In this document: positions 209 to 47,102 of the stretch, in pieces | How positions within the stretch are numbered: position 1 is the first letter of the stretch | Layout of the letters: each line of letters starts with the position of its first letter | Source: Oikopleura dioica | Lineage: Eukaryota; Animalia; Chordata | Direction of reading: 5' to 3' | Length of the DNA: 64,000 bases | NCBI GenBank assembly: GCA_907165135.1 | Contig: OU015566.1 | Span: forward strand, 11,346,001 to 11,410,000 | The notes under the pieces: generated by a model | Databases searched by the model: none | The model's input: only the letters and a program-made list of their open reading frames with translations | What the model was told of the DNA's origin: nothing | Made by a program: the position numbers and the translations under genes

Positions 209-3200
209 ATGTCATTGATAAGGAAAGGCCGCGAAAATATAGAAGTGAAATCACTAACGCGAAAAAGTTTTATTTCCATATTTGTAATGAATTACGCTCA
301 AAGCCGTATAAAGACACAGCAAACTTGTGAGCCGACGGACATTGTCCTGCGGTGTGAACAGCTGCAACGAATGTCTACTAGACAGGCGCCAGCATCTTTC
401 GTCACCTTTCCAGAGGCGCCAAGTTCGTGAGCTGGGATTCCTCGGCGCTGTTGCTAGGACTATTCTGACCAGAGCAGCAGTTGTCGGTATTATTCATCAT
501 CCTTTGTTCACGAGGAAGAAAAGTATGAAATTAAGTGGGAGGGCTTGGAGCAACCGGATATGCGATTGACAAGAAAGTTCGAACATGGGAAGGAAAGAAG
601 TCGTGAAATAGGATTTCCATATATTCTTTTCCGCCTGCTGTGCATTAATCTGGCGGATTTCAGAAATAGAGAGGATCGGATAATGAAGTAAGACGTCAGA
701 CTAAGCACATCCTGTCGGACGGAGCGGGCACCCCATCTCGGACAGGAACCTAGACGTCTGAAATTTTGGCAGACTTGGGATCTATAAACACTCCAGATTT
801 TGAATTAGCAATCATATTTATATGACCAGTAAATAAACTTCAAATTTTTAATTTTTGCCTTTCAGAAGAACTTTCGGCATGAACGAAAGTAAACTCTAAG
901 ATTTCCGAATACAACTTATTTGAAGAAAGCCGCGAGCGGCTTATCTTTGAAGAAATTCTAAGCTGTCAGAAAAATAGAAGAAGCTCTTTTGATTCTTCCG
1001 AAAATATTTCGTTTCCTTTTCTTTGGAAAATATTTATCATTTTTTTCCGCGAGGATGAAAAAGATAACGCCCACTCGTTCGAATCCTCAGCTGGCTCATA
1101 ACCTTGTTAGAGAAAAAAAGAGAAAACGATCGACTTCTGAAATCGATCGTGCTCTGAGGCTCGGGCGTTTTTTTCAGGTTGTTTTTGTGTGTATACCCAA
1201 GTTACGCATACATTTTATTTTACACCTTTTTCTATATTCTTTCACGACTTTTATAAAGACGAGTACTTCGGCCCAGTTGTTGAAGGATTAGATGCAATCA
1301 AAGGTAATTTTATAATTAAGGTAGTTGCTGAAATAACTGTTTATTTTAGGCGTAGCAAGGCCAGGTGCAGATTTGCTCAGAGAGTTCAAAAACGACTTCT
1401 TTTCAAAATTCAATGTGGAGAAAGAATTCAAAGACTTTGAAACCATCGTCGAGGAAAATAAGAAACAAGAAAATTCTAGCAATGATGATGACCCGCTTCC
1501 AGACGGAAAATTACCAGCTACAGTCGCTGCGGCGATTTTTCTTTCGGGGGTAAGGGAGAATAAAAATAGCAGATTTTTTTTAAGGATTTATATTTTGAAT
1601 TCATGGAATTGAAGATTTATAATTTAGAAAGAAGATGAAAGTGACGCAAAGAAAGATTTCGAGGGAAAAGATTTGGCGAGTATGGCGCTCGAATTGGAAG
1701 AGCTTCGAAATGAACTTGCGGTGAGTCGATCGATCACTTATGAGAATCGAGAGGCGCTTATGAACGATCATTAGAATGCGTTACGCGAGCGGAGAATCTA
1801 CGAAGAAAGACTCGCGAAATCTGACAACGATTTTGCGGAAGTTCAGAAGGAGAGACAAGAGCTGCTCAGTACTATTAGACGATTACAAGATCTTGCTAGG
1901 TGAATTTTATTTTTGTATCAATAAAGAGGTTATTTAATTAACGCTCCATGCGCTTTTTTATACCATTTTTTTGTGTTAAATGGAGATTGACTGAATTTTG
2001 TGATAAAAAGCATAAATCATTAAAAGTTTTTTTTACTGAATCATTCTTTTTATTTATGAATCATTTTGTAATTGTGATCTTTTCCAGATCCGATAGATAT
2101 TTATACCCACAAACAGCTGGCACATCTGCTTACTTTCTTTGATGAAATTCTGGCCAGAAATCATCCCCATCATTTCTTTAAAAAGACAGCTGCAGAAACA
2201 TCAATAGAATCTCAATAACATCTTTTTTTAGCCAGCAAGAAGTTCGCCACCACCGAAAAGTTGAAAAGCTCGAGTCCGAATGTTCCGACCTTCATCAACG
2301 GCTCGCCCTCGCCAAGAGCCAAAAGAAAACAAGCTCACAAGCACATGCCCCGAAGAGCATGGTCGAGCAGTATTCCCAAGTGTTGGACGAATTGGAGCAC
2401 GCTCGATTAGTTTGCCCTAATGTGGACCCGCCAGATTTGCCCCGTGTCATCGTCGTCGGCGACCAGAGCAGCGGGAAGACGTCGGTGCTCGAAGCCGTCG
2501 CCAGGTTAGTTTATTTTTCATCACTATTGTGTGCTTACGTGAATTCGACGCATGTTTTTCATAAATAATTGAGTTAACTTACTTCAGAGCTCGTATATTC
2601 CCCGAGGTGGCGGCCAGATGATGACGCGCTCGCCAGTGAAGGTGACAATCGCAGACGGGCCGCGTCATATCGCCAGCTTCCCAGATGCACCAGATAAATA
2701 CTATCGCCTCGACGATGAGGACCATCTCAAACAGCTCCGATCGGAGATCGAGCATCGTATGGCTAGGGCCTGTCATGGCGGACTCACAATTTCATCTGAA
2801 GTTGTTCCAATTAATGTTGAAGGACCTGGACTTAGGAATGGTTCAAAGCGCTTTTCCTGGTTACTGGGATCGAATTCGATAGTGAACCCTTTTAGACGAA
2901 TGGTGCTGGTAGATTTGCCCGGCCTTATCTGCACAGAAACCGCTGGAATTCGCCCTGGAACTGCTCAAGAAATTTTAAACTTGGCGCGCGAGCAAATGGA
3001 CTTTCCAAACGCAATCATACTGTGCGTCCAAGACGGCTCTGTAGACGCTGAAAGGTCACAAGTGACTAACTACGTCCGAGAGGCGGATCCAACTGGCGAA
3101 CGGACACTTCTAGTCCTTACCAAAGTAGACAAAGCGGTGGCCGATCCAGTCAGGCTGAAACAGATTTTGGATGGGAAACTGTTCCCGCTCAGAGCGCTCG

Positions 3201-5965
3201 GCTACTTCGCTGTGGTGACGGGAAATGAGAATAAAGATGCATCGATCGGGGAGATTCGGAAAGGGCTTCGCTATAATCTTCGCCAAAGAAAGAAAAAAAA
3301 ATCATTTCATATTTTTTATGAAGATTCTTCGAGTGAAATAAAAGCCCTAAAAAAGAACCCACGAAAATCAATTTTTCCAGCGCTCGCCCTTGCTCAATTC
3401 TGGGATTCTCCAGCCGGACCAGCTCGGCACCAATAACCTGTGCGATGCGGTTTCGAAGCTCTTTTGGCGCATTGTAAAGAATAGCCTCAGCGGGGAGCTT
3501 CAGAAGCTCAAAGAGCAGCTTTTTATCCTTGAATCTGAATGGAAGGCTCAGGTAAAACAGGAGAATCAGAGCTTTAATTCTTAGATGGATTTAGTACCGG
3601 CACAGGAGAGAGTTGGATAGAGACCAAACTTTTGGGCGAGTCAAGGAAGAATTGTTTGACCGGATGGTTCTTTTGAAGAATTTAGGAAAGGGCGACTTTC
3701 CTAAGATCGAAAATATATCGTCACAGGAAAAATGAAACAGAATAAACCTTATCAAGTGTCTAACGGACAATCCTTTACGGTAGGCGCGGTCAAGATCGGC
3801 ACTGTCTTATTGTTTATCAGCACTTATCGATAGTAAGGGGATTTACCCAAGGGACTATAAAAGTGAGCCAGTCTAACTCAAATTAAAAAAATTCTGCTAC
3901 TGATTACGATTTTTATACAAAAGGGATTTCAAGAGAGCTGTTTTTGTGACGTAAGAAGCTAATTCCCTCCCGACGTTTTCGAAAACATGATTAAACGAAA
4001 TGATAGCCTTGAAAATAGATCCTGGGCAGTTTGAAAACGACTTGAAAGCTAAATTATGGGATACAATCGAATCTCATTTTCTCAACGAAGTATATCTCGC
4101 CGCTGAAGGATCGGTTTCCATATCTTTTTTCTTTTTTTTTTTGAAAGAAAAAAGAAACAAAAAATGAGATGTCCATAAACTTTATGAAGACTTCTTTAAG
4201 AAGTCTGCATGTTTGTTGACCTTTTAAAAAATTGAGAAAAATAGGTGCTCAGCAAATTTCTATACTTATCTCTGAAGTCGAGAATCAATCACAATTTCTG
4301 ACTAGGGACAATAAGGGCGTTTATGAGACTTTTTGGTAACCGTAAAACTAAGACAGCGCTAAGTCAAAAGAAGAGTTCAAAGCTATCTCCGATTTGAGAC
4401 TGAGGAAATTCTCCAACCAAGAGCTGCCAAATCAGGTACGACTGTCAAAAGAGATTCAAAGAGAGTCAAAGAGATTTTTAGTGACCGTTTTTGGCATATT
4501 CTTTTCTTCAGAGAAAGTTTCAATTGATAAAAAGCAAGATCTATTTGACTTTTTGGCACTTTTTGAATAAATTATTCAAGTAATTATTGAAATCGAAAAG
4601 TGTGCCCACATCTGCGCGCTTGTAGGATATAGCAGCAATTAGCCCTGTCAGAGGGCGAGTTTTCAACAAGAGTTTCTTTCTACCTTCATTTTAACTGCCT
4701 TTCCTACAGTCATTGAGCGTGTAATTAAGTCGCTGGCAGCAGTAAGAGATTTACTGATTGAGCGATTTGCCGAACTTGTCCTACCTGAATTGGGCGAAGA
4801 TGCGAAGGCGGAGCATAAACCGCTCTATCAGAAAGTATCCGATGATGTCAAAAAAGGATTTGAGCTTTATTTCAACGAGAGTAGAGTTGCCAGAGCATCA
4901 GGTAATTCAAACTTAAATTTTTTCTATTGTCAATACGATAAATTTAAATGAGGGAGGGTTTTATGGGAGAATTGTTGGATTTTTTGAGTTTTATTTTTAG
5001 AAACTGTTTTTGATGGTAATATAAAATACATAACTTTTTGTTATTCTGATTATAAATATAATTGCTTGATGATAGAGCTTTGATTTTTGCTCATAATTGC
5101 TGAAATACTTTTGGTGCACGTTATATTAAGCATATACTATTTATATGAACAAGAGTGTGTATAGAACTGCGGGTGATCCAACAATCGACAATCGAGAACA
5201 GATTCATCAACTCAAAGATCGAGTGGCAGTCTGCCGCTGATCGACTGAAAAGAACACTTCAAGGCGACCACGAGAAGCGATGGGCGCGCGTTTGGGATAA
5301 TGCCGGGCCGGTTTGGTATCAACAATATTGGAACTGGTCGGCGAGGACGAAGGATCAGCACAAGTGGGATAGGATTAAGAGAGTGCTGCAGATCTTGCCG
5401 ATGAGTACGCAATCCAAATTGACAAAGGATCAACTAGCTCAAGGTACAGCAAAAATATTAGGGTTTTTTCTTGTTAGGGTTAAAATTCCGATATTTCCTT
5501 TATCAAATTTTTTCTCCAGCTCGATTTGATCTTCAAAAATTCTTCTCAATCGAAGCAACCGAAGCCGAAATCGACGATGTCTGGCGCGATCTGTACCCGA
5601 CCCGTTGGATAGCAGCGCTGGAAAAGAACGCTACTCACTGCCGCGGATCGTTTCAAAAGTACAAAGACGGTAAAATCTCGTTTGAATCATCCCGGCTCCA
5701 GTGCGAAGATGTAATGCTCTGGTGGCGAATGGATCGGGCGCTAGAAATGAGTGCCGCGAATTTGAGACAGTTTATGCTAACAGAAGGCGTTGAAACCTTG
5801 GCAAACGAGTTGAAGAACTCGCTGGAGAATTTATCAGAATCGGACATTGTTCAATTAATCAAAGGAAGACAAGTTGAGCTGGCGGAAGAGCTCAAATACA
5901 TCAGGAAAATCCATGGACTCTTACACGAGCTGAATCGGATGCTCAACCAAGTCTACGGACATTGA
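209..5965 (+). CDS. OPA1: Mitochondrial dynamin-like GTPase OPA1 (multi-exon; 5' exon boundary uncertain)
   Basis: Spliced translation contains DLPRVIVVGDQSSGKTSVLE (G1), IFPRGGGQMMTRSPVKVT, GPGLRRMVLVDLPG (G3) and LTKVD (G4). It also has GKLFPLRALGYFAVVTG and a C-terminal GED-like GRQVELAEELKYIRKI. The Arg/Ser-rich N-terminus resembles a mitochondrial presequence. Confidence 0.92.
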
Positions 5966-16749: not shown

Positions 16750-19287
16750 ATGTCGCGGTGGGTTGGGGACAATGACAAATCATCTATTTCGGCGGTCGAT
16801 CAGCTGTCAGAATGCTTCGAAGAGCTTCTGAAAAATGGCCAGGATCTCTCTGATATCACGTTCGTCGTGGATAACAAAGAGTTTTACCTCCACAGATGCG
16901 TTTTGGCGAGCAGAAGTTCTTACTTTCGCGCCTTGCTCTTTGGGGGAATGCGTGAGTCGCAAGAAGACAAGGTAGAATTAAGAGATACAACAGATGCAGC
17001 ATTCTCAAAACTGATTTTCTTCATTTACACCGGACGCATCGAACTTCAACTACTCGACAAAGACCTTGTATTGGACATACTCCGCCTCGCCCATCGATAT
17101 GGATTAGGAATCGTGTTGAAACGGTGACTTTTATTATGCATACACAGAACGGAAAAAGGCTGGAAATGCTGTGCTCTGAGTATTTGGCCCGCCGCGGATC
17201 CTAGGCAGCATTGGCATCAAGCTTCTCTTCTTGATGAAAAAGTAGTCATCATTCAAGTCTGGCGAGTCGCTATGGGTGGGAGTTTCCCCTCGATCGCGAT
17301 CGAAAAGAGCTCTGAAGGCGTCCAAAGAGGTGAAGGCTTCAGTGAAGGCTTTAGTGGGGTCAAATGAAAATCCGGTAAACAAATTTCCAAAATCAAAAGA
17401 GCTGCCCGTTCCTAACATCAGGAGAAAAATTCTCATCTTTTAGAATCTTTGCGAGTAACATTCTTCATTAGTTCCCCGACCTTTTATTCGTATCGTTATG
17501 TTGCATATTTAATAGGCTCGTTAGTAGTTTTAACGCAATTTGAAACTAACGAGTGAAAAGTCTAAAATGTCAACACGAGTTAGAACAGCTTGTCAGTTTG
17601 CTGAGCAAGTTCCTGAATTCAACCTTGCGCCTTAGGGATGTTTGCAAGATCTTCAATCATGCGATTATGTTTCAGCTTGATGATTTAGGTTCGGAAAGAC
17701 AGGGTCCTGGTTTTGATTAATGGAATCATTCAGTTCAGTCTACCTCTGACTTTATGGATCGTCACGCGACGGAGATCCTGGAAAGCGAGGAGCTCCTTCA
17801 TTTGTCCGATGATGCATTAATTAAAGTATGAACTGACCCAAATAGTAGCTCGATAATGAGTTCTTTAGCTTATTTCTCGCAACTCTTTCTGCGCTTCTGA
17901 ACTGGTTATTTTCCGCGCTGTTGCCGCCTGGTGCGAGTACCACAATGTCGTTGGGTCAGATGCAGAGCCGATTCTGGAATGCGTGAGACTGCCCTTGATT
18001 GGAATGAAGGAACTGCTTCATGAAGTTCGGCCGATGGGGATAGCCTCGCCCGACTCGATCATGGACGCGATCTCGTTGAAAGTGGAATCTCGGGATATGG
18101 AGCTACCCCACCGTGGGGTGATTTTTCCAGATCGAAATATGGCTGTAGGAACGGAAGGAGCGGAAGTTATCGATGGAGAGTTCATTCAGTTTCTGCTCGA
18201 CGGAAACTCGAAGGATTATAACAACGATAAGGGATTTTCAAGGCATATTATCGGCAATAGGTAAATTCAGAATGAAGGAAAAAGCAAAACGTTCTTTTCA
18301 GCGAAACCGGCGAACCAAAAGCAATCGTGGTCAGCCTTGCCCAGCCAACCATCCTCAATCATCTGAAACTGCTCCTCTGGGACAAAGATGATCGAGCGTA
18401 CAGTTATTATGTTGAAGTGTCTGTCGACGGGAAGGACTACCTGAAGGTCATCGATTATGCAAGCTATTTTTGTCGCTCGTGGCAGAATTTGTACTTTCCC
18501 CAGCGAGTTGTTCGCTTCATTCGGATTGTTGGAACTGCGAACACCGCGAATAATGTATTTCATTTGGTGACCCTGGAGGCGTATTACAGGGAGAATGTTC
18601 CTGAATTCGATCAGAAGGTAAAATAACCCGTTTTTCTTTGACCTAACTTGTTTTAGGGAATCATCAAGCCTGTCAAAAACGTAGCTTGCGTTCGAGAGGG
18701 TGCAACAGTCATCGAAGGAGTTTCAAGAACACGAGATACTCTAATTTCCGGACAGCTTGGCGAGTATGACTGGGAACAGGGCTACACCTGTCATCAGCTG
18801 GGCGTCGGAGCTATTGTTGTACAACTTGCCCAACCGTATGTTCTTGGAAGCATGCGATTACTTCTCTGGGACTGTGACGATCGACAGTATACTTTTGATA
18901 TTTATGTCTCTACTGACAGGTACACAAAACCTACATTCACAAATAAAACTCTTCAAGGAAAACATGGCAGCTAGTGGTAAAGAAAGAGCAACTTTGCCGA
19001 AGCTGGCAATACATGGAATTCCCCGCACGCCCTGTTGTATTTTTCCAAGTTGTCGGAACACACAATACTGCGAATGAAGTTTTCCATGCAGTTCACTTCG
19101 AATCCCCTGCGCAAGTCGGCCAAGAAGAAACCGAGGCACGATGGAGGCCAAGCCCAAATCAGTACCAAAATCAAAATCAAGAGCAAGATGAGAATACGAA
19201 CTCCGAAGAAAGTAGGTTATAAACTCTTTCTATCCCTCATTTTTTCTAGCGGAAGATGATAATTTGTCGAACCCTGAACCTACGTAG
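16750..19287 (+). CDS. BTBD9: BTB/POZ-BACK-F5/8C protein BTBD9
   Basis: BTB domain SDITFVV..HRCVLASRSSYFRALLFGGMRES, BACK domain VRLPL, and two discoidin-like repeats LLLWDKDDRAYSYYVEVS and YDWEQGYTCHQLG...LLLWDCDDRQY. Confidence 0.92.
17134..17436 (-). CDS. Nested antisense intronless ORF (100 aa), candidate secreted peptide precursor, inside the BTBD9 intron 17108-17583
   Basis: ATG is directly preceded by aaaag. The protein has a short hydrophobic N-terminus MRIFLLMLGTGSS, an acidic spacer, a KKR site and a C-terminal 29-mer. Confidence 0.55.
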   Translation of the reverse strand: MRIFLLMLGTGSSFDFGNLFTGFSFDPTKAFTEAFTSLDAFRALFDRDRGETPTHSDSPDLNDDYFFIKKRSLMPMLPRIRGGPNTQSTAFPAFFRSVYA

Positions 19288-19420: not shown

Positions 19421-22008
19421 TCAATTATCTAATGGAAGAGATCCTCTCTTCCAAAAAAATTTATTAGTTTGCACTTTAAAAACTGCTCATTTATCGAGCA
19501 AGTTACAAGATATTGCTGTAGTTGTCCATTGGCGTTCCATATCGAGCGTCTATAATTTGATTTTTTCGCCTTCTTCAAAACCTGCTTACTTGATACAGAA
19601 CTTGAAGTTGACGAGAGGGGTCCTCTAATCGGCGAGGTCGGAGATAGCGGCCGGAGATATCGAATAGATCCCGTTTCAACAAGCCAGCTTCTGTAATCAT
19701 TATTCAAATCTGCAGCTGAGTTATTCAAGTAGTAGTGCTGTGGGAGACTGAGTTCGGAGCTCGCTCGGAGAATGGATGGCTTTTGTATATTTATATCAAG
19801 CACGGTATCCTTTCTTCGACCAACGTAGTTGTACGCCGCTTTGAATCCTTCGTAATAGTGGGTGAATGATTTTCGTTCGGAACGCTCGTGGCTCCATGTG
19901 AGTCGGAGAAGGTTAGCCACGTCGGAGAAGACCTGCGAAGATCAATTTTAATTGCGCATTGATAACTTACCTCGACGTGTTGATGCTGGTTTAGAATATA
20001 AGGCAGTTCATGCCTGATGTCCATGTTCTGCTTGTAACTTTTTATCAAGTCCCAAGTGTTCAAGCCCGTCACGCCATCAAGAGGGTGACCTCCTCTATTG
20101 AATACTTCCCAAATTACATATCCGAAGGAAAATATGTCAGAGTATGTGGAAAACTCGAAATTGAAAACTTCAGGTGCAAAATTTCGAAGCGGATGAGGTT
20201 TGTCATTATTCTTCATCGTATAGTAGCAGCTTCCATACTCTTCCGTTGTGTAGGACGACAGCCCGAAATCGGATATTTTTGGGACAAGGTTGTCGTCAAG
20301 GAGGATGTTTTTTGCTGAAATATCGCGATGGAGAATTTTATTTTGCGCAAGAAAATCAAAGCCAGAAGCACACTTAGAAAAGTAAATCAGCTATTGTAGC
20401 AAAGAAAAAATGTACCTGAAAGAGAATTTTCAGAGCATGCGTGAATCTAATGACGTTCGAGGATTTACTGACGTATTCGCTTATACTCCTATTTTTACTG
20501 TACAATGGCATTACGATGACAGGATGATTACCATCTTCGATTGCTGTAAAGATGGTAACTAGTTTGTTCCTGAATTGATAATAGGTAAAATTTTGTTTTT
20601 GCGTTGACCATTTCCTATGCCATAAATTTCCACAACATATTTACTCTTTGCTCGAAGCACAAAAGAAGCCTCCTTGAAATAGTCCGTGGTATTCGGACAA
20701 AAATTTTTAGGAAAGCCAGCGCAGCACTTTTCTTTCTTGAATCTTTTCACGGCAACAGGAACAAACGATGTTTTATTGCTTGATATTGAATTCTGTCCTC
20801 GGTCATAATCTCATGTTTATGAAGAAAGTAAAACTGATTAATTTGCATTTTTACAGGAGTAAATGACCCTATCCTGGTATCTCAGATGACCTTTGTATAC
20901 GTTTCCAAAATAACCAGCACCGATTTCCCTGCTGTCAACCTTGAGCATTTTCTTCGAGATGTAAATCTTCTTCAGGTCAGCTTTGACTTCATCAGAGACT
21001 TCTGCTTTCTGGAAACTATTTATAGTTCTTTCGTAAAATTCTTTCCTTGTCTTCTCCAATCTTTTGTTCTTTAGCAGGAATAATTTGGTCGCTGATTGTT
21101 TTACCAAATGTCTTGATTGCGAGCCCCTTGGGAAACAGGTCAACCACACAAGATGGATCAAGAGCAGGACAATTGTTGGCAAGAACGTCATCATAATTAT
21201 AGTTTCTTCTGCCTCCTCTTTTTCTGTCCCGATCGTTACTGTTATCGTTTTTGTGGTGTTACCGAACTCGAAATCCGTCCACATTCTTTTCAATGTTGAA
21301 TATTGCACTTCGACAACTGGGAAGTTTTCTATCACTCGGGTTAAAAAAAGTAACGGCAACTAATTCTGAATTAGTAATTCATAACAAGCATCACTTATTT
21401 TTCAACCCGACGCTAGTATACTTGTCGGCGAATTGTCGGATAATGATTTGTCAATGATACTTTCTGAGACCACATCAATGATGAGAAGTCCAGCTGGGTT
21501 CCCTGTATCATCATTCATGTACTGTTTAGCCATCTCAATCTTGTCCTCATAGTTACAGTCGCCAGCGTTTACGAGAAAAATAATTGGCTCGTCATCGTCA
21601 GGATGAATGGTTGGCTCGTTGTGCTGGTACTGATAATCTTGACAACCGTCTTCAATACTAGCCCATGGTCCGGAATCATCAGATTCGGAAGGTTGAGAGA
21701 CAATTATTAGCTTTGCGGATACCTCTTTGCAAATGTTTAAAAATATTCTGTTAGAGAATGCTTACCGTCAGAAATTCTGTACATTGTTTTGTCAATCCAT
21801 TTTCCACTATACTCTTCCGTTTTAGAAGATTCATCATTTTGTCCCTTGTCCTCTAATTTGATCGTCGTGTAGTTCTTCCTCGTTAAAACGGCGATGTAGA
21901 AAATGAAGTAAATAGAAATGTAGTACACCCCTGAAAGCGCGTTAGCAAATTCTCTTGATTTTTGGTTCTACCGATAGCAATTAAAAGATAGACCCATTTT
22001 TTCTCCAT
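19421..22008 (-). CDS. Receptor tyrosine kinase-like protein with PA (protease-associated)-like ectodomain, TM helix and kinase domain
   Basis: Kinase motifs are EIGAGYFGNVYKG, VAVK, HRDISAKN, KISDFGL, YY in the activation loop, FAPE and SDIFSFGYVIWEV. The TM is IIMMTFLPTIVLLLIHLVWLTCF. The ectodomain reads DGC...IIFLVNAGDCNYEDKIEMAKQ...AGLLIID...FPVVEV. Confidence 0.85.
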
Positions 22009-22806
22009 GCTAGTGCTTCTTACAGATATATATTTCAACAGAATAAAAAAAGCAAATATATGCCGAGAGTAGTTTTACATTTTGCAAATTTTATTTCCGC
22101 TTCGTGACGCACTTTTCTCTCTCTTTATCATGGAATTTGCAGGGGCAGATGGCAGTCTTTTCGCCCGTCGGGATTTCTACTGGGAGTTGGACAAAATCAA
22201 TTTCGATCCTGATTGCTGTGCTCACACTTGAGCCTTGACCTCTCTGAAAACCTCATTAGTGCTCGAACGGGCTTTCCGTGTTTTTAATCTTGTTATTTAA
22301 ACTCATTTTTCTAAATTTAAACCTAGTCCTTTTGTTTGGTTGCTACAAATTATCTAATAGTGATCGAAACATATCACTAAATAAAATGAAAAAGATACAG
22401 TCAGCTACTTCTAAAGACAGTTAGGAAGGTCGAGTTTTGAATGGGTGACCATACCTTTGCCTACAAATTCATTTTCGACCGTCTTCTCTTTTTATTTCTT
22501 TGTTTAGATTAATGAGGCTAGTGGACAAGCAAAGAGTCAAAGTATTTGAGTACTCTGAACTTCGCTTGGTTTACTGTTGTTCACGTCGAGGCCAACTTCT
22601 CAATCTGTCCTAAGCAGATTTTATCACCACAAATTTATGAGAAAAGAAACCTCCTAAAACATGATACACGTGAAACAGTTGTTTATCAAAAATAAGAAAT
22701 CACATGTTTACAATTTTCTCAACAAGAAAGCAGTAGAGTCTATTTGTATTTATATAAGTGACTTCAAAGTCAAATTCATCTTTACAAGCTTCTTTTTGCA
22801 GTTTTT

Positions 22807-25754: not shown

Positions 25755-28700
25755 ATGAAAATTTTTCAAGGGCTTTTAGCCTACGCGCTTGGCAGAACAG
25801 TCGAAGACGTATCAGTCACGAAAGATTTGGGAAATGATATTCGAATCACCAAAGAAACAGTAAGTTTGATTTAATATCTATTATATAATTTTTCCTCTCA
25901 ATTTTTCGGAGCTAAGTTCAGGGCGTAATAGAGCTTTAGAAAATCTCTAAAACGTTTATCTGAGATTAATTATCTCTAGGCCGAAGCACTCGAGTTACAG
26001 GGCATGGATATCACCGGCTGGAAAATCGTCGGCAACAAAGATCTCGATAAGAAGCTAAAGAACAGCGCCAAAGATGCTCAAACTCGAGGCTTAGGGTCTG
26101 TTTACGGTATGTGGCAGCCCATAGAAGACGGGGGAAAAGTAATGGTTCCATTCACCGTCCACAGTTCCTACTCACATCGAACCGAGCAAATCAAAGAAGC
26201 GATGGCCGAACTTCAAGATGTACTTGGCTGCTTTGAGGTTCCATACGTAGAGAATCCGCTGTCGGACGTTTATGGACAAGGAATCGTCTTTGTCGCTGAT
26301 GGCTCGTGCTACTCACTTCTTGGCCGAGGACCTGGATTCCACAATGGCATGCAAGGGGCAACATCAATTTCTGACGTAAACAGAACTATCTATATCGAGT
26401 TCGTGAAGATCATAATATTTATTTTCTTACATTACTGGAAATGAAAAAAATATTAAGCTCGGTGTACCAAATGGATGGCAAGCTATTGCCCTCGATGACG
26501 GCTGCAATCTTGCTTCTAATCCATCGACAGTTCAGCACGAGGTGCTTCACGCACTTGGAGTTTTCCACGAACACTCAAGACCAGATAGAGATAGCTACAT
26601 CGACTATTGGGAAGACCGAACATCAGCCCCAGGTAAGAGTATTATTTCTTATCTTTATAATTCATTATTTAGGCTCCTGGAGCAAATATCCAACAAGTAA
26701 CTGGCATAGCATGGGCTCAATCTACGAGCCTCGATCTGTCATGTCCTACGGCTCGTATGCTACATCTACTACCAGTGGCGTTCCGGTCGCGCTCCTGAAG
26801 GATGGCGGCCAAATCTTTGATGGCGAAAGAATCACAACCGAAGATGCGCTCCAAGTACAATGGATGTATTGCAAAGAGCAGCCGTCGAAATTCCCTGGAT
26901 ACGAATATACTGAGACTGCCACATGCACATCTCAAGACGAAGTAGGAGCGACGAGAAAAGTCTTTACGTCTCGATTGTGCGATGGCATAAGTGATTGCCC
27001 GAACGGAGAGGATGAAGGAGATCTCGCAGTTTGCAAAGAAATCGCTCCAAGAACCCCAAATGGTTGCTGTGGCGCCATTGTGAGAGGCGGGCAGACCTGC
27101 ACCCATAATCCCGACTACTCGTACGGCGACAGAGAAACTTTTGCTTGCGAAGATGGCACCGGAGTAATGTTTGTTCCGTGGGCATCAAACCGATGGCTGC
27201 ACGTCGTTGCCGCGACATATCCTATTGAAGGATCGGTCTCCTGGATGAGCTCAATCGCTGACACTGGAATTTGCCCTCCGACGACCTGGGCTGCATGCGC
27301 TGTAAATGGATACGATGCTACAGACAATTGCGAAACAAACGATTGTGACCCTAACGCGACCTGCACAAGCGGATTTGAGAGCTATACATGCGAATGCAAC
27401 GAAAATTACACCGGGGACGGAAATACCTGCACTTTCATCCCTGAGGTCAACGAATGCGCTGACGGAAGCCATCAATGTGACGAGAATGCCTCTTGTAGTG
27501 ATCTTCGTGACGGATACACGTGCAGTTGCAACGCTGGCTGGAAAGATTCAGGGCTTCAACCGATCAATGGTAGAGACTGCGTTGAAGAGGCTGCCTGTTG
27601 CGATGCTGTCCAGTATGATTTAAGTTTTATAATTTGAAAACTTACTTTTGTTTCATAGATTTTCATTTCCATACGAACAGCTTTGTACAATTGACGGAAC
27701 CTTCGACGGCAAAAAGAGATGGAGCTGCACTGGCGCACACAAGTTGTTTGAAGTTAAATACCACAGTGGTACTTCAACATTCTACTTGTTCGAACTAGGC
27801 ACATGGACCTATCACGCAGTTTTGGCAGCTGATCCGGATTTCTGTTTTGCAGAATCTGATAGCGACTACACTTGCTTGGAGTATGAGGGCGGATCTGTAG
27901 TGACATCATCAACAACGACGACGACAACCACAACAACAAGCACAACTACTACTACAACGACCTCCACTACGACAACATCAACCACGACAACGACAACAAC
28001 TACAACCACCACCACAACAACCACTACAACAATAACTTCTACAACAACAACTTCTTCAACAACCACAACCACCACTACAACATCGACTACAACAACCACA
28101 ACCACCACTACAACATCGACTACAACAACAACTTCTGCGACAACTACAACCACCACTACAACATCGACTAAAACGACTTCTACGACAACAACGACAACAA
28201 CAATTTCGACGACAACTACAACCACCACTACAACAACTACTTCTACAACAACTTCTACAACTACAACGTCCACTACAACAACATCCACAATAACATCAAC
28301 AACTACGACTTCAACAACAACTACGACCACTACTACAACTACCACCTCTACTACCACCACGACATCAGCTACAACAACAACAACGACAACAACAACCTCA
28401 ACAACGACATCGACGACATCATCAACACCTGCTGAGATATGTTCTACTAGTTCCATTCCCGCCGACCTCATAAGCCCTGGAAAATTTGAATGGGATTGTA
28501 AAGAGAAGTCTAAATATCATGAGTGCAAGGTGATATGTGAGGGACAATCTAAACCGGATAAAAAATTCGTGATCCGCTGCACTAAAAACAATAGCGTTTG
28601 GTCTGTTCATAAAGGCTCAGTTCCAAGCTGTGCTCCTCCGCCTCCAAGAGCTGGATGTGAAGAGTCGTTGATCGGTGAAGACTTAACGTCCCCTGGTGGA

Positions 28701-29084
28701 AACACGTGGACTTGCGTAGAAGGCAAGAAGGATAAAAAATGCACGGCAGTTTGCGATGACGGAAGCTCGAGTGAAAATTTCGAAGTCAAGTGCAAATATT
28801 CCAAAAATGGTGACTCAAAGTGGTCAAAATCCAACAAAAAATCCAGTCCACCTCTATGCGGTGCCGAAGGACCTAAAATCTGCCACGAAGATGACATCGA
28901 CCCAGATTTAATTCCGGAAGGCTCAGTTGTTTGGGAATGCAAGGCAAACTCAAAACAAAATGTCTGCAAAGCAAGTTGCTCCAACGGAGCCGATGCTGAT
29001 AAGACATACAGCGTAAAGTGTCAGAACAAAAAGAACACTTGGAAAGTCGAAAAGAAGAAAATGACGATTCTTAACTGTTTATAA
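25755..29084 (+). CDS. Secreted astacin (M12A) metalloprotease with LDLa, 2 EGF, Thr-rich mucin stalk and three Cys/Lys-rich CCP-like repeats
   Basis: Signal peptide MKIFQGLLAYALG, zinc motif HEVLHALGVFHEHSRPDRD, Met-turn SVMSY, LDLa CDGISDCPNGEDE, and EGFs CDPNATC and VNECADGSHQCDENASC. Confidence 0.9.
27900..28428 (+). repeat. Coding low-complexity (ACN)n Thr/Ser repeat (~175 codons, mucin-like stalk)
   Basis: Imperfect ACA/ACT/ACC/ACG codon run translating to TTTTS tracts. Confidence 0.95.
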
Positions 29085-30312: not shown

Positions 30313-33300
30313 ATGGAGGACCTAATTCAGCTTTCAAATGTATGGTAAAAATATTCTTTTCAACATCGTATCATTTTCACACTAATCGTCTTGTCTTTTT
30401 TGTTAGATTCAGCACTACTTTTTTATTGCTTCATTAAATTGCTTGATGAATTGAGCAAATGACAGTGACTCACTCATCATATCGTACTCTGAGAACAAAC
30501 TGAATGATTATTTATCGGAAACGTCATCAAAATGTTCACTTTTAATTTTCCCTTGAAGGAGAATGAGCAAATATTCACGCAAGAGGATATCTTGGCCATA
30601 TTCGACCCAATTTCATCCTCAGAATCGTCATCTTCGGCCGTCTCAACTCCACAGCTTTCTTCCAACAGTTCAAGGCAAAGTTCTAGTCAGCTATCCGTCT
30701 TCAATCAACCGGGTCAGCGAAATCGACCGCCTAGTGATCTAATCCTTCGACCTGCCCGAGAAGACGATATTTCTCTTCCGACACCCCCTTATGTTCCTCC
30801 AATAAATGATTTAGCCAGGGGCTTGAAATTTAGTTCTAGCAACGAAGTTATCAAGTATTTTTGATACATTATAATGAGTAAGCCCTCGCTTAGTCCCTCC
30901 TATTCCAACGCGAACGCAATCAACTTTCGTACGCCCTCAAAATGTTCCCAAGCCACCGAGACGAAGACAAAGTCTTGGCCCAGCAGTAAGGATGAGAAAC
31001 ACCAGTCAAACGATCGAGAGAAGAAATAGGATAAGCTCAGATAGAGCCAGTAGCGTTTATTCAAGGTAGGAGAGACAAGTTGATAATCTCTCTTGAGAAA
31101 CTAATTTGAAGAGAATTCAACTTTTTTCAAGGAAATCTGAAATGCAAGAGCCCGATTCTCCCGCTTCTGCGCTCGCTTTCAAAGTCTACTGGTTACGAAA
31201 CTCGGAGAAATACAGATGGACGAATTCGGAAACGAATCGTGGAATCGTTTATGCGCGGGAGAACTCAAGAATCAGCCACGCGACGGAAATCAAGATTGAA
31301 CCATCGTTGATTACTGATGAAAAGCTGCAAGCATTTACGACAGATATAAGAAGATCTGTGGCTGAACTGATCTTCGACGTGAATGGGAAGCTCAGAGATG
31401 CTCAATCAGACCTGTACAATAAAAACTTCTATTTGCAAGGTGAGTTTGTTTGGGAATTTATTCAGTTGAGTTTTTGAGAGACAAATAATAATAATTTTCG
31501 GAAGCATGCAAATTTGGAAAACAAGAATTTACTGAGTTACAGGGTGTAAAAATATTCGATTTTTCGTTAATTATTCTTTCTTTTCGACAGTCTTTTCCGG
31601 CATCTTTTTCTTATCGTTTTCTTTCTCCATCGTTTTTGGAGAAGATTTCTCGGTAGCTGGTTCTTCCTCAGAGATTTCTTCCTTCTTGGCCTTTTCTTTG
31701 GCTTTTTCGGCCTTTTCTTTTTGTTCCTTCAAGAACTCCTTGATAGGTCGGAATGGTTTCCTGGGCGCTTTTTCTTTTGGCTTTTCTTGCTCTTTAGCCC
31801 GCGCTTCTTTTTCTGCCTTGAGCTGCGCTTCTGAAAAGGGTTTCAGACGGCCAAAGGGTCGTTTTGTTTACCTGTTGGAAAATTAAGCAAATGAAAATCG
31901 AAGTTCATGTAAGTTCTATCTTGCTTGTTTCTCTGCTTGTTGGTCATTTGCGCTCGATCTCTCGGCGGTTGAGGTTGCCAATCGGGATGTTTCGGGTATC
32001 CAGGCTTGGGGTAGATGCTAGCGAGGTAGAAGATCATGTTCGAATTTTTCGCTTTTTGGGAATGTATTTATTCAATATTTCTTTCGATTTTAAGTAAGTC
32101 ACTAACTGTTAGTGAAAATAGATCCCCTTCCTAGCACCGCGAGTTTATGTGCCTCAAAGATCTTTTCTTTCTTCGCTGGTTCACCGACGTAATCCCGAAC
32201 AGCCTTAGCGAGAGCATCCTTGTGCCAGTCCAAGTTTGTCTCATGCCAAGCTCGGACTTGCTCGCGAGAAGGTCGGAATTGCGGAAATGAGTACCAGTTA
32301 TTGTTGCTCATCGTTAAAAATCGGCGATTTGCTATTTTCGAGAAATGCGATGACTTCAGAGAATAAACAGCTTATATAGTCGGCTCGGATAAGTCACGAA
32401 ATTTTATGAAGGAACGAAGATTTAGTCGAATGAGAGAGAGAAATAGCGAATGGAAGTGATCATAGTTGATATTTTTTGCGTATTCAGTGGTTTCAGAAAC
32501 GATTTGGGCCCCAAATTTTGGGGGGAGGGGGTAATTTTTTGTGTTTATCGGGCGCTAGAATTACTAAAAATCATTAGTCGCTGCAACGAAAGAAATTCTC
32601 CACAAAGAAAGTCGTCTAAATCGCCTTCAAGTCGTCCGTGAAATGCTCAAAGTTCAAAGTCCACTGAAGCTCAAAGTAATATCCGAATATTCCCTCGACA
32701 CTTCCCTCATCCGGACTGCTGCTGACGATGCCTTCTGTGACTCCCCGCCTATTGAAATTACACACAAACTCAACACACAAAATGACCTTGCGAAAATGGC
32801 CGAAATCGAAAAGCTAGTTGCTCTTTGCATGGGCGAATGCGAGAAATTACAGAATTGTTCGATCACCAGCACAGAGCGTCATTTACATCTGATTCATGTT
32901 CAACAAGCAGTAAAAGCACTCATCATTCAACTGAACGAAGTTGAGATTTTCCCCATTTCTAACGCTTCTATTAGACTGGCCGCAGCTGTAAATAATTCTA
33001 GCGGCCCAGAAGATGTGAAGCTTTCCATAGACAAGGTTATCAAAACATCCTTCTTTAACCTTTTATCTTCAATTTCAGCTTCGAGCAGCAATAAACGATT
33101 TAGTCCACCTCTACAAAATCTCCTGGACGGATCTCGAACACAACATACCCCACCAGTGCGACCCGTCTAACGAAGTCCACGATCCCCTTTCTCTTCAAGT
33201 CATCAGTCTTCATCAAGTTCCAGAAAACTACCTTCATTCTTTAAAAATCGAATATCTTTGGATTGCAGTATCTATCATTCGGGGCGATCGTGCTTCTTGC

Positions 33301-36300
33301 TGTAGAAAAAGTCATACAGGTACCTTGATTTTCTCATCCTTATTTCTCACAATCTCTTTAGGAAGATCGCGTGTAAAAAGAAGCCTCTTTCCCCGAGTTC
33401 TTTGGGACCAGCAGCTCACCCTCAACTTTTCCATTTCCCAACTTCCACTTGACGCAACTCTTTTCATCGAACTTTATGGCACCGAAACTGTCAAAACGTC
33501 CAAAGAAACGCCCATCGAACGAGAACACGAACTATCATCTGCCAAAATCCCTCTTTTTGACTTCAAACGACGCCTCTTGAAGGGCGAGAGCCTATTTCGT
33601 CTAGAAAAACTCCACGAAAAATACCCCGAGCCTATAATTTACATTGAGCTTCCCTACCACTGTATTCAATTTCCGGAAATCGCAATTAGTTCGCCAGCAA
33701 GCAATCCGAAGGAATCGCCGGATTGGCCTCTTGCGTTGAAATTATTGCAGTCAACTTATGAAAAGAAGAATTTAACGGATTTAGAGAGGCAGTTGATTTG
33801 GAGAAATCGGTCAAATGCGATGCGAGATTTGCCGGAGGCTCTTCCTTTTATTCTCAGATGGTATGTAAAGAATCTTATGTAAGAAAACTGGGTTATGCAT
33901 AATTTCACCTCAAAATTTATTGTGTGTTGTCAGAAAGAAGGCTATCGAATATTTGCTTGTTTATGGTTGAGCTTCATTTTATCAAAAGAATGATTTTTTC
34001 ATTTTTTAAGCGTTTCCTACCCGTACCTTATTTTAACCATCTTCGGCCATCTAGTGGCAAAGAGTAACAAGAACTTCCGTTTACTTTAAATCAATAGAAG
34101 ATCAATGATCGATCTGAAACTGATTTTTCAACCGATTCAATTTCAGTGTCGATAATTGGAATGCTGAGACATTATCTGAAGTTTCCGGCCTCCTCTCCAG
34201 CTGGCCAACAATCAAGCCTCTCATTGCCCTTTCCCTTCTCACGAAAGAGTTCATGTCCGTGCAGTTCGTCCGTGATTTCGCTATCAAATGTCTCAAACGT
34301 GCTAACGAAAGCGTTCTCCTGTCAGTCCTCACGCAGCTTGTTTCCCTATTGCAGTACGAAAAAACTCAAGACAGCGTTTTGGCCGTGTTTCTTCTCGAGC
34401 GCGCTTGGAACTCAATTAGAATCACTTTCCACCTCCATGCAGCGTTGATAACAGCTGCCGATCACACTGCAGCGCCGATTTTCTATGTGATGCAAGATCT
34501 TCTAGAGTGGTCCTCAGGCGCTGCGTTGAAAGCAGAATTGACGAAGACGCAGAAGATTTTGAACATTATTAACTTTAATGCATTGAGAATCAAAGACGAC
34601 CGATCCAACTATCTACAGCATTTTGAGTCCCTTTGGAATTCGATCGCTGAGTTAAGCCCCTTTCGCCTCGCTGAATTTCCAACAGTAGAATTTGTCAATA
34701 TTGTCATAAGCAAATCGAAGCCATTTTCATCATTTACTGCGCCCTTATTATTGACCTTAGAAGCGAAAAACGGAGAACGGTATTCGTCAATTTATAAAAA
34801 TGGCGATGATCTGCGACAGGATCAACTTGTTACGTCTCTCTTTCATATGATGGAAAATTTCTGGCTTTCTCAAGGACTTGATTTGAGAATGCTCGGCTAC
34901 TCTGTTTATCCAACCGCCAAGAATTGTGGATTCATTGAAATTGTTCAAAATTCTGTCACTCTCAGGTAAAAAACCTTTGTTCTTTCCGATTCTAGCGTTA
35001 CTTCAGACAGGTTCAAGTTGGCAATAACCAGAAAGAAAGATGCCTGCATGACTGGCTTGCTGGTCAAAGAAACAATAAATTTGAACTCATCGACAATTTC
35101 TCCCGATCATGCGCTGCATATTCCGTCGCGACTTATATTCTCGGCCTTGGGGATCGACACAATGACAACATCATGATCACTCGCCGAGGGCACATGTTCC
35201 ACATTGATTTCAACAAAGCATTCGGTCATTATCAGAAAATCGGAGGCGTGATCAACCGAGATCGAGCCCCATTTGTCCTTTCCGATGACATGGTTCTCGT
35301 TATCAACCACGGAGCGACGATGGAAACAGGTCGCAAGTTCCCTGCTTTTGTCCAGCAATGCGCAGAGGCTTACAACATCGCTAGACATCATTGGCGAGAA
35401 ATCATCTCAATGATCATGGTTTCTGCGCCAATGAATATGACAGCGCTAAAAGAGGGAGGAAATGAAGTACAAGTCGTGTTCGAAAACCTCTCCCCGACAA
35501 TTGGTTAGTTCACCTTAATATTTGATTGATTTATTAAACAGATATGACAGAGGATTCTACCGATTTTGCATTATGCAAAAGTTAACGCGTTTTTGAGTTC
35601 ATTTTGAAAATAATTCGCGCCAAGAGTCTTTGAAAAATTTAAGTGCACGAGATAACAAGCATTTCCCTAGACGACATTGCCGCACAAGAAATGTTCTTCA
35701 ACCGCGTCAAGAAATCGTACACGTCGTTTTCCACTCGTCTCAATTTCTTCATGCATACGTTCGCTCAGCTTTTCCAAACAGGTGGCTGGGATGGAGTTGA
35801 ACCTCTGCCCGACCCGGTCAAATACACTGTCCAAGAAGTAGGGCGCCCGATAGACTTTGAAATTGAAGGCTTCGAGATGAAATTCCGCAATACAGACAAA
35901 TTTTATTCTTATCGCCTAAGAGTGCGCTGGCCAAATCGAACAAGTTTCATTTTACGCTCCTGGATTGAATTCACTCAAATTCGATCAGTAATCGAAAAGT
36001 TTCAAATCGAACGCGGAGGAGAGCCAGTCCCGCCTCTTGGGAAGCTAGAGCTGAGTACAAGAGGTGATAAGGACTCAGTGGCGATAGCAAGAAAATCAGC
36101 AATTTTCGACTTTCTACAGTTTGCCAATGCCGAGGCACAGGTTCGAGATCATCCAGCAACGATCACCTTTTTGTACGAAGATGAAAAGCGGCCACCTCCG
36201 GTCACAAAATCCAACAGCATTCCCACTGGAAGCAGACAAGGCTACATAAATATAAACATGTTCTTCGAGAAAGATAACTACCTGAAAATTTTGGTGAAAA

Positions 36301-36654
36301 ACTGCTTCGACCTTCCATCGAGCGAAGGAAGAGCACCGGAGAGCTATGTCAAGGTGTATATTCGCGATGAAAGTGGAAATAACATAAAAAGTACGAAGCA
36401 AAAAACGACTACGGAGTACTCGCACAATCCCGTTTTCAACAAAGTCTTTCGTAAGTCGAGAAATTTCGGCTTCGAAATATTTATCAAACATTTTAGATTA
36501 CGATTTAGAAGACATCCCGTCTTTTTTGGAAAAAGATATTGAAATTTCGGTGTGGAATTACTCTGGAATTTCCGCCTCGAATTTCATGATTGGCCGCGTA
36601 ATTCTTCCTCTCAAGCAGGTCAAGGAAGGATATCTTGAGCTTCTCTCGCCCTAA
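30313..36654 (+). CDS. PIK3C2: Class II phosphoinositide 3-kinase (RBD, C2, helical, kinase, PX, C2)
   Basis: YKNGDDLRQDQL, YILGLGDRHNDNIM, HMFHIDF and RDRAPFVL are followed by a PX domain (YSYRLRVRW...RSWIEF) and a C-terminal C2 (SYVKVY...NPVFN), which is diagnostic of class II. Confidence 0.93.
31571..32311 (-). CDS. Nested antisense 3-exon orphan gene (~206 aa, Lys/Glu-rich C-terminus) inside the PI3K intron 31440-32577
   Basis: Exons 32311-32131, 32051-31872 and 31830-31571 are joined in frame by a GA-AG (79 nt) and a GT-AG (41 nt) intron: MSNNNWYSFPQF...FPTEAQLKAEKEARAKEQEK...VEKKE*. Confidence 0.72.
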
Positions 36655-36857: not shown

Positions 36858-37923
36858 TCAGCAGGTGCCTTCAGGAAGAGCTTCAGTTCCAGAACAGCAT
36901 TGATTTTCTCGTCTTGGCTTGTTGAATGGGAAAGTGGAAGTTGTTCCGCAACACTCGACGAAAGGAACTGATGGGCCGACGGGTCGGTGACAGTGGTCTT
37001 CTCGGACAAAGCCGCCTAGAATTTGTTTCTTGGTCTGTTTGCGTGAAAATCATTTTTTTACCTTTGAACTCATGAAGTGCTGGATTCCACTCATTTTCAT
37101 GCTTCGCCAAATTCTTGGCCAAAGCTTTGTCACACTCGCAAATGGCTCTTCTACAGGTTCCTGGTGGATTTGTACAGACGATGTCTCGATCGGGGTCTTC
37201 TGCAGCTCCAATGAGATCGAATCGGTAGCTAGAAAGTAATTGTTACTCTTGAATTTCGATCTGATCTTTTTACCCAAGCAATTCTCCTGAGCATTTGTCC
37301 ACTTGGCCACCAGCCCAGGTTTTTTCGGGCTTCATTTCTTCGAATTCAGAAACAAGACATCTGTAACAATTTCTCAAAAAACAACTCTCGTTTAGCTGAA
37401 ACTTGAGTTCGGGAAAGTGAGAGTTTTGGTAAATGTATGTTAACTATTGAGAAACTTTCCTGTAGCATTGCTTAAAATCAAAACAGGCCTTGTCAACCGA
37501 GTCCTGTGGCTTTCCATATCCTCCCGACGCGATATTGTGACTTCCTTCGGGCAAGCAGTAGCATCCATAGAAGCAGTATCTTCCAAACTTCTTCGAGTTC
37601 TGGAGCCAGAGGACAAGAATCTTCATCTGTCTGAATTTTCGCTCTTCCTCAAGATTCATGTCCATTCGAGTGTCGCCGCCCATGAGATTTCTGATCATTT
37701 CGTCGATCTCGTCGAAAGTGCCCCCAGTGATCTGGTCCAAAATTGCTGTCAGCTCATCTGGGGATTCTTCACCAGTGAAAGCATATGTGATTTCTCGAGT
37801 TGCTCTAGAATTATTTTTAACCTCTTGTGCCTGCATGAACAACAAATTTGCAAACGAGCAATCTTACCTTTGCAATCTGGAGGCACTGGCCAATGAAGCG
37901 GTCAAAAAGTTGAAGATTTTCAT
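36858..37923 (-). CDS. Secreted phospholipase A2-like protein lacking the catalytic His-Asp
   Basis: Signal peptide, then YGCYC...GYGKPQDSVDKACFDFKQCYRC and CRRAICECDK; five exons. Confidence 0.85.
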
Positions 37924-44898: not shown

Positions 44899-47102
44899 CT
44901 AAAGTTGATCAGCGAGGAACTGCTTGCCGATCTTTTCGACAAGACTTCGGAGAAGAACAACGTCGGCTTTCTTGTTTGGTCCGGGTGGACCTTGGAAGCC
45001 TTGAGGACCGGGCTTTCCATCCGGGCCCTTTCGACCTTGTGGTCCGGGTTTGCCATCAGCTCCTACGTAAATTGTATAACTTCGGGTTTACTATAATAAA
45101 TTACCAGTAGCACCGCGGGGACCAGGATTTCCAACCGGGCCGTCAGGTCCAGGGGCACCGTCTTCACCATCATCACCATCTGGACCAGGTAGACCTGGGG
45201 CACCATTGGGCCCAGGAACGCCATCGCGGCCATTGACAGTTGGTCCTCGTGGACCCGCAGGTCCTTGTGGTCCATCAGGACCAGGTTTGCCAGGAGCTCC
45301 CATTGGTCCAGTAGAACCTTTTACATTTAGTCAATTTTGAAAATAAATTTGATCTTACCTTCGGGTCCTCTTGCACCATCTTTTCCGTTTGGTCCGCGCT
45401 GTCCAGGTGAACCTTGGCGACCTTGTTCTCCTTGTGCTCCAGCAGGTCCATCAGCACCTGGTGGTCCTGGAGGTCCGCATTCGCCGTCTAATCCGTCAGC
45501 ACCGTCGAGGCCATTTTTACCAGGCATGCCTGGAAGACCAGGAATACCATCAGGTCCTTGAGGACCTGGACCTCCGTCGGGAGCTCGAACGTTTTCTCCA
45601 GGGATTCCGTCAGGACCAGGTCGACCTTCTTTTCCGGCTTCTCCGTCAGGACCGTCCTGACCATCACGTCCAGGATCACCGTCGCGACCGCGCTCACCAT
45701 CTCTTCCGGGTTCACCTCGCTCCCCATCTCGTCCACGCGGTCCCGGTGGTCCTTCAGGTCCTTGATCACCTCGACGTCCTTGTCCTGGTTCTCCAGGGGT
45801 CCAACTGGTCCTCTTGGACCCTCAGGACCTTGTTCACCGGCTGGACCAGGTAGACCAGCATCTCCGTCGGCACCATCAATACCTGGCTGACCTCTGTTAC
45901 CTTGAGGCCCTCGCTCACCGGGCTCTCCAGGTTCACCACGCCGACCAGGTCGACCTCTTTCTCCTTCTCTGCCATCTTCCCCATCTTTGCCAGGGGCACC
46001 AGGAGGACCACGAATACCAGGAAGCCCTTTGTCATGGTTTTCTGGAATATCAACTTCGAAATCACAGACATAGGTTACTGGAGGACACTCATCATCAGTT
46101 TCGCCAATCACAGGAGCTTCTTCGACCATTTCTTGAGCCATTTCTCGGAATCTTGTTCCAGAAAGGTCTTCAGGGTAGACATAAAACTCAACAGATCGAT
46201 CTTGCGAGGTAAATTCTTGAAGAGCAAGTTTGTTTGGACAGTCACGGAAGGGATTTGCTCGGTCGGCGTCGTCGCAGTAGGTCAAAGGGACAAACCAGGT
46301 ATCGTACTCGTCAAGGAACTCCTTACCATTTCCAAGTACTTCCTGAGAATATTTTCCGTTGGAAATGATCACAACAGTAGCCTCTTCGTCGGAATTTGAG
46401 TATGTTCGGAAGTGAGACTTCGCTTCGTTTAGTGCCAATCTCATGTCAACACCTATTGCAAAAAATAGTCAAAGTCATAAAATTGCTCGAAAACCTTGTC
46501 CAAGATAAGAAATTTCTTCGGCCACATTCTCCGCCAACAGCTCATCACTTGTGTAAACCTTGTTGTCTCCAACATACTCGAAGCTGTTGGAAAAAACGGA
46601 GATAGAGTATTTGTAGTTTGTGGCGCCTTGAGCGTCAATATTGGCGACAAGAGTTGATACGGTTCGTTTGACTAATGTAAAGTTGTAAAAGCCGTAAAAT
46701 TGATGTATTTCCGGGCGTACCGTATGGAAGAAATTTATCGATGCAAATTGATGAGTCGATTACAAATAGGACATGACGCGGCTTTTGCTCGGGACGAGCG
46801 GCTTTGCAATTGCCGTTTGACTGGATAACTTCATCTTTCAAGAGTCATTTTGATATTTTTCGGTAAATTGAACCTCTTTACAGTACTCATACGGTATCTA
46901 AGATAAAAATTCATGACTCTTTCCGAATGGAACTTCGATTGCTCTCTTCGCCCTGTGTTTAGTAACAGCGTTCTTTGAACCCTTAATACTTATTAAATTC
47001 AATAAATTCAAGCCCTAAAACCCGTCCGATAATATCTCCAATGTTCCATGTCCAGGCGTCTCCCGTCGCCAGCAGCGTCGTGAAAAAAGGAGCAAGTTTC
47101 AT
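44899..47102 (-). CDS. Short-chain collagen with N-terminal vWA domain; one apparent 1-bp frameshift
   Basis: Signal peptide [16 protein letters not shown] and vWA motifs HVLFVIDSS and VVIISNG precede ~300 aa of interrupted Gly-X-Y and a short C-terminal tail. The frame break is at the G4 run 45796-45799. Confidence 0.85.

Follow-up and report, generated by a model that had tools for sequence, protein, structure and literature searches.

In Oikopleura dioica, one gene places a PA domain before the transmembrane (TM) helix of a divergent TK-class kinase domain; both parts are present on one transcript of its ortholog, and the gene is under purifying selection. The gene lies in the window, which denotes the whole stretch of 64,000 nucleotides that was analyzed. 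It is the ectodomain that defines an RTK family, and in chordates new families are rare. Membrane ubiquitin ligases, sorting receptors, and proteases are the proteins that otherwise carry PA domains, and to our knowledge, no metazoan RTK (MET/RON, FGFR/VEGFR, Eph, or EGFR) uses a PA ectodomain. The sequence-only reading had claimed the same for the classical metazoan families. In the literature, neither an already described PA-RTK family nor a PA-bearing RTK was encountered, including in kinome surveys, the coverage of the literature being incomplete. As far as these surveys show, the architecture is quite probably undescribed in animals. The preferred reading, to which a probability of roughly 0.55 was assigned, is that the O. 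dioica lineage possesses an orphan receptor kinase, in which, by analogy, partner binding to the PA domain would lead to clustering, kinase activation, and SH2 docking.

Gene structure and the spliced ortholog

The receptor kinase gene occupies positions 22008-19503 on the minus strand and comprises nine exons with 690 codons and a stop codon, as determined by three-frame reading and splice-site inspection. From the N- to the C-terminus, it encodes a hydrophobic segment, the PA domain, the TM helix, the TK-class kinase domain, and a Tyr-rich tail. Exons 1-5 are located at 22008-21972, 21930-21766, 21724-21407, 21328-20874, and 20792-20615, and exons 6-9 at 20543-20416, 20372-19971, 19932-19590, and 19549-19503. 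The eight introns measure 38-81 nt each, and as their phases agree, the model is frame-consistent. GT-AG ends occur in six of the eight, and GA-AG was read for introns 4 and 5, the former on the basis of a spliced ortholog and the latter from sequence conservation. In the ortholog, intron 3 has a GA donor a little further upstream, which leaves the donor of the window intron uncertain within a few codons. Orthologs were found in other O. dioica-like lineages (L010-L014, L042, L043, and L045-L047), and the intron positions were kept where checked. The features of the gene are as follows.

21972-22008, minus strand: coding part of exon 1, with the ATG and the first half of the N-terminal hydrophobic segment; exon and intron position shared with L010, L045, and L046, and spliced in L042
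21884-21996, minus strand: N-terminal hydrophobic segment of ~23 residues, spanning intron 1; Kyte-Doolittle 19-mer value of 2.36 in the spliced ortholog
21766-21930, minus strand: exon 2, with the end of the hydrophobic segment, a linker, and the lead-in to the PA domain; ~50% identity to orthologs
21407-21724, minus strand: exon 3, with the PA core and both ectodomain cysteines (EDGC; AGDCNYEDK); Pfam PA, 28 of 30 PA in the ESM Atlas, and invariant G, C, K, and A
21228-21328, minus strand: 5' part of exon 4, with the final PA strand-helix-strand (FPVVEV ... TITVTIG); FPVVEV aligns with IPIVWL of PA domains, and the model has strands at 124-129 and 150-154
21132-21203, minus strand: transmembrane helix; Kyte-Doolittle 19-mer value of 2.37 in window exon 4 and 2.55 in the ortholog
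20946-21131, minus strand: basic juxtamembrane region of ~60 aa, conserved in orthologs
19828-20945, minus strand: TK-class kinase domain in exons 4-8; Pfam PF07714, PDB matches that are all tyrosine kinases, and ortholog identity
19590-19827, minus strand: C-terminal tail in exon 8, with the conserved YYLNN at about 19734-19720; 92% identity and the motif list
19503-19549, minus strand: exon 9, which holds the actual stop codon; also conserved in both L010 and L012, and spliced in L042

The sequence-only reading had set the 3' end at 19421, but this end results from reading through intron 8; the true stop codon is the TAA at 19505-19503, and the last exon and its stop are confirmed by the spliced ortholog L042. 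The motifs EDGC, PIIFLVNAGDCNYEDKIEMAK, and AGLLIID were present in exon 3 where that reading had placed them. Moreover, FPVVEVQY, KTITVTIG, the TM helix, and the Gly loop of the kinase follow in one uninterrupted frame in exon 4 (21328 to about 20874), this window exon alone joining the last PA strands to the juxtamembrane region and the start of the kinase. The N-terminal hydrophobic segment may be a long signal peptide or an uncleaved signal anchor; if uncleaved, the PA domain may form a loop between two helices. The 5' untranslated region (22030-22260, minus strand) contains short blocks showing conservation across lineages as well as an upstream intron, which is spliced out in L042.

The expectation that PA and kinase exons occur in one mRNA was borne out by an ortholog; among the reads and contigs of the Okinawa population, from which the window derives, none reached from PA to kinase. 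The contig L042 (Ga0115100_10585276), found among JGI contigs, carries the exon matches back to back, with seven of the eight introns excised at the positions known from genomic orthologs; as the introns are missing, it is taken to be RNA-derived. A single open reading frame at 425-1588 of L042 encodes the PA domain, the TM helix, and the kinase N-lobe, with Pfam matches to PA (E 4.4e-4) and PK_Tyr_Ser-Thr (E 4e-4), so ectodomain, TM helix, and kinase are joined in one polypeptide, as in RTKs. The remaining exons are on the same molecule, and the rest of the kinase was matched further along the contig at E 5e-33. The sole retained intron is intron 5, which has the GA donor; this GA-AG intron (L042:1572-1629, equivalent to window 20614-20544) ends the protein after the kinase N-lobe. 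Its retention probably reflects slow splicing and would yield a kinase-dead PA-TM form. RNA reads of another population covered mainly the kinase and tail exons, with little coverage of exon 4 and the 5' end and none of the PA exons, owing to the divergence of the population that was sequenced. These reads gave no called joints, and the exon 6/7 junction was seen as a loose end.

Ectodomain and kinase domain

The window exons were searched individually, one by one, and the results for the joined ectodomain refer to the ortholog L042. In Pfam searches, PA was the sole match of window exon 3 alone (E 0.18, 12.3 bits), an ortholog exon matched PA at E 0.0076, and the full spliced ortholog ectodomain matched PF02225 at E 5.9e-5 and 23.6 bits against a cut-off of 23.9, covering profile positions 10-91 of 95. 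PA clusters made up 28 of the 30 ESM Atlas matches for exon 3, and a second search yielded 30 of 30. The ectodomain carries the PA signature, C ... hydrophobic strand-x-G-x-C-x-[FY]-x-x-K-x-x-x-A ... hydrophobic strand ... P-V/I strand, whose G, C, K, and A (G-x-C-x-x-x-x-K-x-x-x-A) are invariant across 21 alignment rows including canonical PA domains; the Arg before the G in RGxC is Ala here. The PA region has exactly two cysteines. On these grounds, the PA assignment made by the sequence-only reading was upheld, and we consider it very likely that the ectodomain is a divergent but real PA domain.

Profile-profile comparison with PA by hhalign was weak (probability 25%, E 7.6e-4), and PDB sequence searches with the PA exon, the PA-exon profile, and the spliced ectodomain returned no PA relative because the ectodomain is too divergent. 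The AlphaFold model based on an orthologs-only alignment was poor (pLDDT 43) and had no significant fold match; Foldseek ranked PA proteins 1, 2, 4, and 5 for this model, but at E values of at least 0.44. When canonical PA rows were included in the alignment, pLDDT was 57.5, and the top ten matches of this partly circular model in VIA were all PA-type (Z 4.8-7.4), including the PA domain of VSR1 (7.4), SBT3 (6.1), and the PA domain of GRAIL (6.0). Against atlas structures, the same partly circular model reached TM scores of 0.50-0.56. It shows compatibility with the PA fold. The structural comparison with GRAIL proposed earlier gave a match with the canonical-row model and no significant one with the orthologs-only model.

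For the kinase, exon 7 matched Pfam PK_Tyr_Ser-Thr (PF07714) at E 2.3e-27. All universal catalytic residues (GxGxxG, beta3 Lys, alphaC Glu, HRD, DFG, and APE) are present. The landmarks are GAGYFG at 20921, the Lys of VAVK at 20747, a Cys-rich insert at 20726-20697, the alphaC Glu at 20672, HRDISAKN at 20330-20307, DFG at 20270-20262, the activation-loop YY, and PLRNFAPE at 20192-20169. TK-specific constraints include the catalytic-loop AAR and the Trp of the activation segment (PMC8662651). Both hallmarks are replaced here: AAR (or RAA) is SAK within the HRDISAKN of all orthologs, and the P+1-loop Trp is Asn in PLRNFAPE, where the Pro is retained. With these two hallmarks replaced, the protein may or may not belong to an RTK family in the strict sense. 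The kinase has the TK-type P+1 Pro and lacks both the Ser/Thr-type HRD-x-K and the alphaE His, and its PDB matches were all tyrosine kinases, with no family favored. Since its scores were nearly equal against MET, SYK, FGFR, VEGFR, and Eph (71-76 bits), no RTK family could be assigned. An assignment to MET was not supported in view of this tie, and neither the Sema-PSI-IPT ectodomain nor a clearly MET-type kinase of MET/RON was found, the ectodomain being PA. The motifs make tyrosine specificity probable. The earlier proposal that PA recognition is coupled to tyrosine phosphorylation was therefore retained in part: the catalytic residues are complete, but two TK hallmarks are replaced, and phosphorylation itself is a prediction. 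In the tail, YYLNN contains YLNN, a Y-x-N motif of the Grb2-type SH2 consensus that is kept in all orthologs, and the tail-end motif YSNI is FSNI in L042.

Conservation, relatives, and possible origin

The receptor gene is under purifying selection, with dN far below dS. The identity between the window and its orthologs was 54% in exon 3 and 90% in exon 7, and ortholog identity was 85-91% in exons 5 and 7 and 71-76% in exon 6. For exons 5-8, with kinase and tail, dN was 0.04-0.14, and for exons 2-4 it was 0.29-0.36, with dS mostly saturated. Exon 3 had a dN of 0.36 and exon 7 of 0.065, and the exon 8 tail, at 92% identity, 0.04-0.05, all with saturated dS. A phmmer search with exon 3 against 1.84 billion representatives returned O. 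dioica-like lineages and two spurious repeat proteins and nothing else, and the exon 4 protein search returned seven proteins with 59-93% identity. No homologs outside the O. dioica complex were found in searches limited by length windows and word matches, and the known range of the gene is the O. dioica complex only.

Downstream of the receptor gene, a convergent BTB and F5/8-type gene (BTBD9-like; window 16750-19222, plus strand) ends ~280 nt from the receptor stop, and this neighbor is kept in L010 and L043. Elsewhere in the window, a gene at 26004-29084 (plus strand) combines EGF repeats with a long mucin-like region rich in Thr and, at the C-terminus, cysteine-rich repeats; its N-terminal part appears astacin-like by eye and had no Pfam match. 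The regions 2618-5965, 31106-36542, 37444-37845, and 45488-53588 hold a dynamin-family gene, a PI3-kinase, a phospholipase A2-like ORF, and collagen-like Gly-X-Y genes, all of them ordinary.

In animals, the PA-TM module is known mainly for receptor ubiquitination. The PA-TM-RING ligases (Goliath/GRAIL RNF128/130/149/150, RNF13/RNF167, RNF43/ZNRF3, and PLR-1) share with the receptor an N-terminal hydrophobic segment and a two-cysteine PA domain directly before one TM helix, and the sequence-only reading was correct in likening this juxtaposition to theirs. However, a kinase follows the juxtamembrane region instead of a RING domain, for which no exon tested in Pfam gave a match. Unlike theirs, the receptor PA domain has extra residues inserted ahead of the first Cys and behind the K-x-x-x-A helix, and it lacks the Arg of RGxC. 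Metazoan RTKs (MET/RON, FGFR/VEGFR, Eph, and EGFR) share the order of ectodomain, TM helix, juxtamembrane region, and TK-class kinase, as well as the activation-loop YY and the Tyr-bearing tail, and differ in the PA ectodomain and the altered AAR and P+1 Trp. The receptor is no PA-TM-RING ligase; it has the layout of an RTK and, in the proposed mechanism, would work like one. Among lineage-restricted shuffled RTKs, Venus kinase receptors (PMC3703292) and Met-LP (PMC6374515) likewise carry a recognition module from another receptor class on a tyrosine kinase, but here the module is PA and the known range is far narrower. The PA domain of VSR1, a plant vacuolar sorting receptor, was the best structural match of the canonical-row model (rmsd 3.8 over 123 aligned residues). 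It binds protein cargo; in contrast to the receptor, VSRs carry additional luminal domains and lack a catalytic one, and sequence identity is 11%.

The receptor ectodomain is single-copy in the genome, and ordinary PA-TM-RING genes are present at other loci (L004 and L005). Apart from a young duplicate, the closest kinase, itself an orphan receptor kinase, is at G000:C5 about 2622600-2626500 (L017/L037:4600-8500; intron-less ortholog L044:127-3741). Its cysteine-rich ectodomain of ~830 residues is unrelated to PA and had no Pfam match. The Cys-rich insert that follows the beta3 Lys occurs in both kinases, as do the Trp-to-Asn change and a motif in subdomain IX; the catalytic loop of the G000:C5 kinase reads HRDIALRN. 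In the kinase tree, the two form a moderately supported clade with L034 (86/93). Related kinases with unrelated ectodomains imply ectodomain shuffling, in either direction. The young duplicate at G000:C4 about 6281300-6283000 (L016; L036:6776-8473) groups with the Okinawa receptor gene (90/86) and is 77% identical in exon 7. Its TM helix and kinase are under purifying selection (dN below dS), no PA exon was found in ~16 kb upstream, the Gly loop is GAGHFS, and the YLNN motif is lost. It may act as a kinase anchored in the membrane or as a decoy partner.

Concerning the donor, the receptor PA domain scored somewhat higher against PA-TM-RING-type domains (shuffle Z 2.6-4.6 for Goliath-like and 1.7-5.7 for RNF13/167-like) than against PRADC1-/EDEM3-type domains (0.3-2.9), with overlapping ranges. 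The scores weakly suggest descent from a PA-TM-RING ligase, and their overlap leaves several donor subfamilies. The idea of a Goliath origin of the juxtamembrane helix was set aside, as the TM/juxtamembrane similarity was no better than that of a control TM. A gene with a signal peptide and a PA domain is located at G000:C5 about 12156000-12157600 (L006; L039:3020-4630). Its PA exon gave the top score against the receptor ectodomain (Z 6.3), and tblastn detected no RING within 7 kb; the gene is a candidate relative of the PA donor. We see an even chance that the gene arose in the larvacean lineage when a kinase was fused to the PA(-TM) module from a PA-TM-RING ligase, that this architecture is undescribed in animals, and that the product is an active receptor kinase converting client or ligand recognition of the PA-ligase type into phosphorylation.

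Proposed function and alternatives

The PA domains of RNF43/ZNRF3, GRAIL, and VSR1 bind protein partners. In the proposed mechanism, the PA domain would face the extracellular space or the lumen of endosomes and would bind a protein, either a secreted ligand or the ectodomain of another receptor. Binding would cluster the receptor, the kinases would trans-phosphorylate the activation-loop YY pair, and phosphorylated tail tyrosines, such as that of YLNN, would recruit Grb2-type SH2 adaptors, a docking step predicted from the motif. The outcome of PA recognition would be a phosphorylation signal and not ubiquitination. PA domains act in partner recognition (PMC3937510). The replaced AAR and P+1 Trp, the Pfam score just short of the cut-off, and the poor orthologs-only model weigh against this reading.

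A different possibility is a substrate-recruiting membrane kinase, in which the PA domain would hold a transmembrane client that shares its membrane, for example a Frizzled-type or other receptor, perhaps in endosomes. The tail of the client would then be phosphorylated by the kinase, and the protein would be a receptor modifier and not a ligand-gated receptor. This is considered rather unlikely: the PA domains of GRAIL and PLR-1 do recognize substrates (PMC3937510), the PA domain lies ~8 residues from the TM helix as in PA-TM-RING ligases, and the altered P+1 pocket suits a narrow, dedicated substrate, but the activation-loop YY and the strongly conserved Tyr-bearing tail suit autophosphorylation and docking. 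The same architecture could instead carry a kinase of shifted specificity (Ser/Thr or dual) or a near-inactive one serving as scaffold or allosteric partner of another RTK, as the AAR Arg and the TK Trp are lost. Lmr kinases are a precedent for shifted specificity. However, the universal catalytic residues are all invariant across lineages with saturated synonymous sites, the change from Arg to Lys retains the charge, and no Ser/Thr-type determinants were gained; this explanation is likewise considered rather unlikely.

It is highly improbable that the gene does not encode a true PA receptor, whether through chance resemblance to PA or because the join in L042 is an assembly chimera. The sub-threshold Pfam score, the hhalign result, and the PDB sequence searches lacking a PA match leave some room for it; however, independent methods concur on PA, the junctions of L042 fall exactly at intron borders of the separate genomic contigs L010-L014, and a single genomic exon holds the final PA strands together with the TM helix and the beginning of the kinase. 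Splicing in L042 and the PA searches have already largely refuted this explanation.

As an orphan receptor kinase, the protein represents a natural experiment: a kinase has been wired to a PA-TM module of the ubiquitination type. We know of no PA-domain ligands for most Goliath/RNF13-type ligases, and the small ectodomain with its phosphorylation read-out could ease their discovery. The apparent range of one complex, together with several other odd Oikopleura kinase fusions, points to a lineage innovation and not to a general pathway. The receptor, its sister kinase with an unrelated large ectodomain, and the young duplicate devoid of an ectodomain record ectodomain exchange within one kinase subfamily of a fast-evolving chordate.
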